Notes under the pieces: generated by a model
What the model was told of the DNA's origin: nothing
Seen by the model: the letters and a program-made list of their open reading frames with translations, nothing else
The model's database searches: none
Made by a program: the position numbers and the translations under genes
In this document: positions 36,297 to 38,006 of the stretch, piece by piece
Layout of the letters: each line of letters starts with the position of its first letter
How positions within the stretch are numbered: position 1 is the first letter of the stretch
Source of the DNA: Oikopleura dioica
Taxonomy: Eukaryota; Animalia; Chordata
Direction of reading: 5' to 3'
Length of the DNA stretch: 64,000 bases
NCBI GenBank assembly: GCA_907165135.1
Contig: OU015568.1
Location: 14,446,001-14,510,000 of the forward strand

Positions 36297-38006
36297 TCAA
36301 AGCGTAAATTTTCCAGTAAATGAAATTTTTGCGGGCCCGATCATTTTCACGGTCGTTTTGTCGAGCGACAATAGCATTTCTCCACCTTTGCATTTGAATT
36401 TCACTTTTTCCGAGTTCGGTAACTTTCCGCATTGATTGAGGACTCTTCCCGGATTAGAAGAAATTGCTAATTGGAGAGCAGGGAAATTAAAGCAACACTT
36501 AGTTTCATTGGTAATTTAATTATTGTATTGTTATGCCTCGGAACATTAGCATGTACGAATTGAACGATGGTTTAATTCGATCTTGAGTTTATTAAATATT
36601 GATAACGAGGTATTGAAATCTTCATTTTTGTCGAAACTCGTTTTTATGTACTAATCCAGAACAATAACTCGTAATTGTCAATAACTATTGAATAACCCGT
36701 TTCAAAAAAGGAGGCGCAGCAACCAGATCCACAAGCTAGAGTTTCTCCAGAACCACGTTCTACCGTTCTTTTTCAAATTAAGATGAAGAGACTTTTCTGT
36801 AATTTGACGTTACCTAATATCAACACAATCTGGTTGAACACGTACGAAATTAACATTGACGGTGGTTACGAAGTTTGCCTCCGCAAACTTGTTGATTTTC
36901 GCAACCATATCGCCAAAATCCTCCAACCAAAAATTCTTGCTCTCCATCTCAGAAAGGGTTTATGATGCAAACAAGATGACTTTGGTGTCTGCACCAGCTC
37001 TGTTTTTAGCAAAAATAAAAGTGTTCAGTTGAATAAGAAAACCCTTTTCAAAACAACAGCATGTTGATTGCCAATATCCGCAAACGGGATCTGCACGACG
37101 TGCTTATTTTAAGACCACGTTGAAATTGAAAATTGGGTATTTTTATATTCCGTAAAAAGATTGACGAGCGCAAGTTTTCGCTTATTTTCTTTGCACGGTT
37201 CCTTGACATCTTCTAAAAGCAACGGCTCGGGGGATGACATAAGCTCCACCGAACCCATGTTGACTTCTATTTGATCGCCTTCGTGCGCTATCAAATTTAC
37301 CGTGCCAGATGCGGTCTATAATTACGACGTTAAAATTTGAATTTGACATTGATCAGACCTTTATTTTCATATATTTTGTTTCAGCGATTTGAGATTTTTG
37401 CAGATAATGTCCTGAAATTAATAAGTCATATCAATAACAAAAGCTTTTGAAAATGATAACGCCTCATTTTTTAAATATAAGGTTGTATCAATACCCTAAT
37501 GGATTTACAATTTACTTTGGATTTCGGGCTTCATTTTTAAGTTACAGTCAAATAAGGCAGGTTTACCCATTTTATGATTTTACAGCAGGTGTAGCACAAT
37601 AATCTGATCGCTAGAGACTCCAGTGGAGCTTATCTAATCGATCAATCTTTAAGGTACTCCTACCTATACACCTGAGAGCGTTCCCACATGTCCTCCCTTC
37701 TGATCCATCTGCATTGAACATTTTCATTCCAAAAACATCCCCCGTTTCCCCACCAGTTTCTTCCAAGGAAATAAACACAAGTCCGTCACCTCCAACACCG
37801 AAATTTCTATCGCAAAGAGCGGCAATTTTCGCTGGTTGCTGCAGCTGCTCAAGTTGTGTTACACTCAGCTCGTTGGAAATCGTGTCAATGAATATATAAT
37901 CTGCGTTTATTATTCAACCGGGCGAGAGTTTTTTTAAGGTAATAGTTGAATAAATTCCCTTTCCGTTGCCGAGACCTTGCATTTTTACGAAATCAATTAC
38001 GTCCAT
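36297..38006 (-). CDS. dapF: Diaminopimelate epimerase (DapF), multi-intron gene
   Basis: Spliced motifs [78 protein letters not shown]...MIGPAKISFTG; about 7 introns; one internal splice (36960-37040) unresolved. Confidence 0.88.

Follow-up and report, generated by a model that had tools for sequence, protein, structure and literature searches.

A full-length, intron-containing diaminopimelate epimerase gene of probable bacterial ancestry in the chordate Oikopleura dioica

A 64,000-nt stretch of contig OU015568.1 of the chordate Oikopleura dioica (hereafter the window; all dapF coordinates are window positions and all lie on the minus strand) contains a gene for diaminopimelate (DAP) epimerase, DapF, between positions 36297 and 38006. 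DapF belongs to the bacterial routes to the cell wall and to lysine and is usually missing from animals. We consider it likely that this gene encodes a functional DAP epimerase and that its ancestry is foreign, namely bacterial. A first-pass annotation of the sequence had put the gene forward as a candidate horizontal transfer, and our analysis supports this view: the nearest named relatives are bacterial, the gene belongs to the host genome, and it is under purifying selection. A bacterial dapF in hemipteran insects, a prokaryote-derived dapF in choanoflagellates and an automatic, truncated database entry from Oikopleura were already known. New are the corrected full-length Oikopleura gene and a divergent, eukaryote-only DapF clade that contains it.

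Gene model and active site

The span given by the first-pass annotation is exact to the base, with the ATG at 38006-38004 and the TGA stop codon at 36299-36297. As it had proposed, exons on this strand assemble into a full DapF; there are eight, in an open frame that codes for 283 amino acids in the preferred version (283-305, given two ambiguous junctions). They are separated by seven introns of 63, 252, 43, 105, 95, 46 and 254 nt, where about seven had been estimated. Every motif it had listed was found, RTCGN (with Cys86), LACGS (with Cys224), GND, FNADG, GNQH, NVNF and ERG, as was the proposed TTCTCAG acceptor at 38015-38009, two bases 5' of the ATG. A point absent from that annotation is that intron 1 is of the GA..AG type, the remaining six being GT..AG. 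The features are listed below together with comparisons to L001, a marine metagenome lineage of O. dioica type, to the public protein model CAG5090352.1 (NCBI) and to RNA run X4.

38009..38015, minus strand: putative trans-splice (spliced leader, SL) acceptor TTCTCAG, by sequence only, 2 nt before the ATG
37964..38006, minus strand: exon 1, MDVIDFVKMQGLGN plus 1 nt, ATG at 38006-38004; exon and splice also used in NCBI CAG5090352.1
37901..37963, minus strand: intron 1, 63 nt, non-canonical GA..AG, phase 1; GA..AG in L001 too; removed in the NCBI model
37664..37900, minus strand: exon 2, with Asn77 (FNADG), catalytic Cys86 (codon 37688-37686) and Asn88; Pfam PF01678 at 2.7e-11
37412..37663, minus strand: intron 2, 252 nt, GT..AG; the L001 intron at the same position has 67 nt
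37359..37411, minus strand: exon 3, GHYLQKSQIAETKYMKIK
37316..37358, minus strand: intron 3, 43 nt, GT..AG
37208..37315, minus strand: exon 4, TASGTV...PEPLLLED; use of another donor, at 37165, would lengthen it by 15 amino acids
37103..37207, minus strand: intron 4, 105 nt, GT..AG; read through to a stop in the NCBI model (179 amino acids)
37043..37102, minus strand: exon 5, HVVQIPFADIGNQHAVVLKR, which holds Asn159 and His161 of GNQH
36948..37042, minus strand: intron 5, 95 nt, GT..AG
36814..36947, minus strand: exon 6, MESKNFW...NVNFVRVQPDCVDI, with Asn198; RNA reads of run X4 at 36828-36867
36768..36813, minus strand: intron 6, 46 nt, GT..AG; the orthologous junction is spliced in mRNA reads of a sister lineage
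36697..36767, minus strand: exon 7, (R)TVERGSGETLACGSGCCASFFET, with Glu215, Arg216, catalytic Cys224 (36733-36731) and Ser226
36443..36696, minus strand: intron 7, 254 nt, GT..AG; with another acceptor, at 36467/36466, the protein would be 8 amino acids longer
36297..36442, minus strand: exon 8, VLNQCGK...GPAKISFTGKFTL, stop at 36299-36297
36286..36291, minus strand: putative AATAAA polyadenylation signal, likewise from the sequence alone, 5 nt past the stop codon

Our first model of 305 amino acids was replaced after a comparison of lineages, which shifted the 3' boundary of exon 4 and the 5' boundary of exon 8. A longer exon 4 was rejected: stop codons interrupt it in both L001 and L005 (a further lineage of this type), and a GT donor directly after LLLE(D/N/G) is conserved in the window, L001 and L005. 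For exon 8, use of the upstream acceptor costs 9 bits against the DapF profile and is without a counterpart in L001, in which an acceptor joining "...ET" to "VLNQ" is the only kind possible. Counting against our model, the long version of exon 4 scores 4.6 bits higher against the DapF profile, both of these junctions are ambiguous, and the acceptor of intron 4 may lie 12 nt further on. At the position equivalent to TTCTCAG (38009-38015), L001 has no AG. Intron 1 is GA..AG in all lineages seen (in L001 at 309-373) and is 74% identical between the window and L001, compared to 50% for all introns pooled; this suggests that its sequence may be under constraint, perhaps for non-canonical splicing or regulation.

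According to Pfam, exon 2 alone matches DAP_epimerase (PF01678) with 44 bits and an E-value of 2.7e-11 (gathering cutoff 34.7), and exon 7 gives a weak match to the second DAP_epimerase domain (9.4e-4). The 179-residue N-terminal protein at NCBI, which corresponds to exons 1-4, reaches 116.3 bits with the NCBIfam equivalog TIGR00652 (cutoff 114.65), and for the same query the competing families stay far under their cutoffs (CntK 16.8 vs. 300, bifunc_DapF 27.6 vs. 350). With a local profile built from 56 full-length DapFs the spliced protein reaches 249 bits (E 1.7e-77), and full-length DapF proteins align with it from end to end (E 5e-50). Sequence matches in the PDB, obtained with the N-terminal half as the query, are all DapF, the best being the Arabidopsis enzyme (3ejx) and the weakest the O-ureidoserine racemase 7vdy.

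An alignment with E. coli DapF indicates that N11, N64, C73, G74, N75, N157, H159, N190, E208, R209, C217, G218 and S219 of the bacterial enzyme are all kept in the window and in L001. In the 283-residue model these positions correspond to Asn14, Asn77, Cys86, Gly87, Asn88, Asn159, His161, Asn198, Glu215, Arg216, Cys224, Gly225 and Ser226. The catalytic pair consists of Cys86 (TCGN) and Cys224 (ACGSG), one from each domain, which align to Cys73 and Cys217 of E. coli in both the window and L001 proteins. The position of E. coli Q44 is occupied by a glycine in the Oikopleura protein, and likewise in 56 of 56 comparison proteins. The roles of the conserved residues in DAP binding are presumed to be those seen in the aziDAP structures of the H. 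influenzae enzyme. In the alignment the N-terminus lies level with those of bacterial DapFs, leaving no signal or transit peptide. Judging from these features, the Oikopleura protein is probably a cytosolic DapF (EC 5.1.1.7) with a complete active site.

Related lineages, transcripts and the host genome

Exon 2 was searched exhaustively against 1.84 billion cluster representatives, which gave only three close relatives (78-89% identical), all of them gene calls on marine metagenome contigs; L005 was added by a metagenome scan and L172 by cluster membership. The intron positions are as in the window in L001, L172, L002, L005 and L003, which are loci of O. dioica type from marine metagenomes. 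L001 contains the whole gene with all seven introns at the same positions, introns 1 and 7 being GA..AG there. Over the full length, the window and L001 proteins are 77% identical, with a proportion of nonsynonymous differences (pN) of 0.14, a proportion of synonymous differences (pS) of 0.69, which is near saturation, and a ratio of nonsynonymous to synonymous substitution (dN/dS) of about 0.08. At the nucleotide level the exons are 75% and the introns 50% identical. At least three divergent lineages of O. dioica type show strong purifying selection on the gene.

The four RNA runs used carry the same species label and come from a lineage 90-95% alike to the window. In run X4, exon 6 is covered by 8 reads (36828-36867). 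The 30-base consensus of one of their overhangs spans the exon 6/7 junction of the spliced L001 coding sequence, from which it departs at a single base, and does not occur in the L001 genomic sequence, while the other overhang is an exact match to L001 exon 6. Because the overhang matches the spliced and not the genomic sequence, intron 6 is removed from the mRNA in the sister lineage. Of three bulk oligo-dT runs comparable in size, X4 contains dapF reads and X5 and X6 do not, which hints at stage- or sample-specific expression.

A look-up by cluster led to NCBI CAG5090352.1 (P0473; Oidioi.mRNA.OKI2018_I69.PAR.g12568.t1.cds [Oikopleura dioica]), for which UniRef gives the name diaminopimelate epimerase. 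This protein of 179 amino acids is identical to exons 1-4 of the window and uses the same GA-AG intron 1, but then reads through intron 4 to a stop. It is devoid of exons 5-8 and hence of the second catalytic cysteine, Cys224, and surveys based on proteomes would score the O. dioica DapF as a fragment. Could the truncated product be the only one made in the window lineage, with the downstream exons as a decaying remnant? The public model does end in intron 4, and among the runs mapped, which are 90-95% alike, no same-lineage RNA covers exons 5-8. Exons 5-8 are nevertheless open, share 68-77% nucleotide identity with L001, just as exons 1-4 do, and keep Asn159, His161, Asn198, Glu215, Arg216 and Cys224. 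Moreover, the exon 6/7 region is transcribed and spliced in the sister lineage, the dN/dS of 0.08 applies to the whole length, and read-through in L001 and L005 would meet stops at other places. We therefore regard a truncated-only product as very unlikely and retain the eight-exon gene.

The first-pass annotation had argued from the introns that the gene is no bacterial contamination. This holds, and is strengthened by the eukaryotic flanking genes, the SL RNA genes and the identity to exons 1-4 of the O. dioica entry CAG5090352.1. On the same contig, dapF is flanked by intron-split genes for Snf7/CHMP, a proteasome AAA ATPase, a protein kinase and a trypsin-like protein. The 22-mer at the 3' end of the Oikopleura spliced leader occurs in three exact copies in the window (42966-42987 and 45629-45650 on the plus strand, 46330-46351 on the minus strand), which are SL RNA genes, and RNA reads over neighbouring genes end in this leader. 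The guanine-plus-cytosine (GC) content of dapF is no different from that of its surroundings. Contamination or an assembly artefact would have to account for seven spliceosomal introns, one of them of the GA-AG type common in O. dioica, for host genes on both sides in one contig, for the same structure in four independent metagenome contigs, and for host-like composition and spliced reads. No point favouring this explanation was found; it is already refuted, and the probability that we leave to it is negligible.

As a side observation, the gene calls P0001 and P0002 (from L001 and L002) are of prokaryotic style and read straight through intron 1. P0002 has a tryptophan at a TGA, a stop codon translated as Trp, and both calls are flagged as not translating to the query. 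Animal genes can be concealed in metagenome protein sets by calls like these.

Ancestry and a second eukaryotic DapF clade

Homology search and phylogeny of the spliced protein, by which the first-pass annotation proposed to check the transfer, gave best full-length matches that are bacterial and an animal-type pair (window and L001) standing apart from the diatom/algal clade. The best full-length relatives are 31-35% identical and come from many bacterial phyla, among them Zixibacteria, Gloeobacterales, Syntrophomonadaceae and Thermoanaerobacteraceae, as well as Muirbacterium, a member of the Bacteroidales, Clostridia, Magnetospirillaceae and Planctomycetaceae. The contigs of the top matches are gene-dense and bacterial. 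No named animal orthologue appeared in the exhaustive exon 2 search or in a search with P0123, a protein of an unnamed marine eukaryote; a collection of eukaryote genomes was not part of these searches.

A FastTree placement beside the Clostridia-type long branches P0042 and P0127 was not upheld in careful mixture-model trees. In these, the pair formed by the window and L001 types first joins P0123 (support 100/88). After three more members had split the long branch of P0123, it joins a clade of four, which we call clade B, with a bootstrap/SH-like approximate likelihood ratio test (SH-aLRT) support of 93/88. Long-branch warnings apply to DapF trees, and this grouping joins two long branches. 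DapFs of diatoms and other algae form a clade elsewhere in the tree; forcing that clade together with the animal-type proteins and clade B costs 29.4 units of log-likelihood and is rejected marginally by the approximately unbiased (AU) test (p 0.039).

Clade B consists of the DapFs P0123, P0331, P0332 and P0333 of unnamed marine eukaryotes (loci L169-L171 and L173-L175), which are about 34% identical to the Oikopleura DapF. P0123 is encoded 230 bp downstream of a two-repeat MtN3/SWEET gene, an architecture that we take to be eukaryotic; the Atlas label of this neighbour is "Eukaryota". P0332 and P0333 lie on ocean metagenome contigs of 6-7 kb with 40% GC and sparse, split gene calls, one of them bearing a Tara sample name, and an animal-type VWD-C8-TIL-VWC-EGF gene is found there. 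A homologue search with the VWD-C8-TIL reading frame gave no match within the length limits. The dapF genes of P0332 and P0333 each have one GT..AG intron of 37-38 nt at a position unused in Oikopleura, those of P0123 and P0331 being intronless. A further cluster member, P0464, comes from a catalogue of marine eukaryote transcripts. Clade B is under purifying selection (dN/dS 0.08-0.12) and its proteins score 187-196 bits against TIGR00652. The fold predicted for P0123 has a predicted local distance difference test score (pLDDT) of 95.7, and each of the top 13 PDB matches to it is a DapF, with template modelling (TM) scores of 0.76-0.84. No synteny was seen between the clade B loci and the window, the neighbouring genes being different.

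Rare characters were surveyed in up to 437 other DapFs. Common to the Oikopleura clade and clade B are TVERG (0 of 410 other DapFs), IGHY after the first catalytic motif (CGNALRCIGHY; 0 of 437), the loss of the proline of GNPH (6 of 420) and a distance of 70-74 residues between the first catalytic cysteine and GNxH, for which the median is 87 (75 or less in 27 of 420). Judged by these characters and the trees, the two clades appear to have a real common ancestry, and from this shared ancestry the acquisition of dapF is probably old. Clade B may itself be animal. From its very short introns, its habitat and the neighbour of animal type, we guess that the hosts are other appendicularians.

Several observations weigh against reading the Oikopleura gene as a functional epimerase gene of bacterial ancestry. 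Beyond the clade B node, support drops to 69/73 and 29/77, near Flavobacteriales, Bdellovibrionota and unclassified Proteobacteria, and no donor is resolved. The DapFs of choanoflagellates, sponges and cnidarians are absent from the trees. The Oikopleura branch is long and carries unusual substitutions next to the catalytic motifs (GNPH to GNQH, VWERG to TVERG), with which a shifted substrate is possible. Finally, the RNA comes from the sister lineage only and amounts to 8 reads in one of four runs, covering one junction.

A DapF of older eukaryotic or holozoan descent that was passed on vertically and disappeared from most animals, or one taken from another eukaryote, would fit the absence of a resolved bacterial donor and the fact that the nearest relative is a eukaryotic clade and not a bacterium. 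Choanoflagellates do have DAP-pathway genes, and amino-acid genes of this kind are stated to occur as orthologues in sponges and cnidarians too (PMC7971027); in addition, the AU test speaks only marginally against an algal affinity. The searches with exon 2 and P0123, however, give unnamed marine contigs and then proteins of 38-41% identity (Bacteroidales and others) with no named eukaryote between them, although the databases searched contain eukaryotic proteomes, and the diatom/algal clade is separate. The choanoflagellate gene has itself been reported as prokaryote-derived (PMC7971027). We consider a vertical or eukaryotic origin improbable, and prefer bacterial ancestry.

Possible roles, comparable systems and neighbouring genes

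If the Oikopleura protein works as its conserved residues predict, catalysis would be independent of pyridoxal phosphate (PLP) and use two bases, Cys86 and Cys224, each at the N-terminus of a helix in its own pseudo-symmetric domain. One cysteine would abstract the alpha-proton of meso- or LL-DAP and its partner would deliver a proton from the opposite face, while Asn14, Asn77, Asn159, Asn198, Glu215 and Arg216 would hold the substrate and its distal L-centre.

A DapF-derived enzyme could also act on a different substrate now, either another amino acid or peptide-bound DAP as a racemase/epimerase, and a role between DAP and lysine would then not apply. There is a precedent in the O-ureidoserine racemase DcsC, which descends from DapF and whose structure (7vdy) is as near to the clade B model as those of many DapFs. 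A change of this kind would agree with the very long stem branch (1.8 changes per column), with the position of TVERG, IGHY and the lost GNPH proline next to the catalytic motifs, and with a shortened inter-domain hairpin. On the other hand, all residues that bind the two ends of DAP are kept, including the Asn, Glu and Arg of the distal site, and DapF is by far the best family by sequence (TIGR00652 over its cutoff; CntK, bifunc_DapF and 7vdy weak). A changed substrate thus seems unlikely to us, although it is the alternative to which we give the most weight, and we continue with DAP as the substrate.

What could a chordate gain from a DAP epimerase? The lysine pathway is regarded as lost in animals, for which this amino acid is essential. 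In gut or other cells, DAP from eaten bacteria might be turned into L-lysine by DapF together with a DAP decarboxylase (lysA), if O. dioica has one. We regard such a salvage of dietary bacterial DAP as possible, if somewhat doubtful. A point against it is that meso-DAP, the common form in the walls of prey, needs only LysA to become lysine, and an epimerase matters mainly for an input of LL-DAP; why pure salvage would require one is not obvious. If salvage does take place, a dominant marine grazer would convert bacterial cell-wall material into an essential amino acid, which was previously described only in sap-feeding insects with endosymbionts. This would matter for larvacean nutrition, for the transfer of bacterial carbon and nitrogen up the food web and for the question of how frequently chordates fix foreign metabolic genes. 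In a wider and more speculative proposal, which we think rather unlikely as a whole, Oikopleura and the animals of clade B, possibly other appendicularians, would have inherited one bacterial dapF and, with an acquired lysA, a chordate would obtain lysine from filtered bacteria. That would amount to an old, symbiont-free nutritional gene transfer across a major group of marine grazers.

The enzyme might instead alter DAP-type peptidoglycan fragments and tune innate immune recognition, with no part in nutrition. Lacking a signal peptide and any N-terminal extension, the protein is expected in the cytosol, which disfavours an extracellular immune role; known DapFs use free DAP, and those residues of the distal site that require a free amino-acid end are conserved. 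We hold the immune explanation to be highly improbable compared to a function on free DAP.

Among known systems, bacterial DapF (E. coli b3809; H. influenzae 1bwz/2gke; TIGR00652, PF01678) resembles the Oikopleura protein in length class, predicted two-domain layout, the Cys/Cys pair and the Asn, Glu and Arg residues that bind the substrate. The Oikopleura protein differs in being at most 31-35% identical, in the seven introns and animal nuclear location of its gene, in GNQH for GNPH and TVERG for VWERG, and in a segment between the first cysteine and GNxH that is about 15 residues shorter. The chloroplast DapFs of plants and algae (Arabidopsis 3ejx; diatom P0223 and P0266) are likewise products of eukaryotic nuclear genes, but they carry transit peptides and form a separate clade, whereas the Oikopleura protein is without a targeting peptide.

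In the hemipterans Bemisia tabaci and Planococcus citri, dapF and lysA, the pair for the last steps, have been acquired horizontally, together with dapB in the whitefly, so that here too a bacterial DAP-pathway gene is fixed in an animal genome (PMC4943190). The hemipteran genes come from identifiable Enterobacterales or alpha-proteobacterial donors, while the Oikopleura gene is without a resolvable donor and belongs to a much more divergent clade. The DAP-pathway genes of these two insects complement obligate endosymbionts; Oikopleura is not known to have a symbiont. In the choanoflagellates Salpingoeca rosetta and Monosiga brevicollis, dapF is prokaryote-derived, and asd and lysAC have been flagged as well (PMC7971027). 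Like the Oikopleura gene as we interpret it, this dapF stems from prokaryotes and is found in a bacterivore, here a relative of animals; it is accompanied by more of the DAP pathway. In the literature, we found no paper that links diaminopimelate with Oikopleura, or dapF or lysA with Oikopleura or other tunicates.

With regard to the immediate neighbourhood, no synteny downstream of dapF was found between the window and L172. Upstream, at 38344-39031 on the plus strand, lies a divergently transcribed neighbour whose first exons have no Pfam match and which includes a trypsin-like exon at 39433-39801. This gene is next to dapF also in L005 (positions 1-670), a lineage with saturated synonymous sites. 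On the other side, a well-expressed gene at 35340-35830 on the plus strand is arranged tail-to-tail with dapF; in each of the four RNA runs its read depth is the highest, and it has a spliced joint from 35641 to 35786 and an SL-like overhang (GTCTAACAGC) at 35342.

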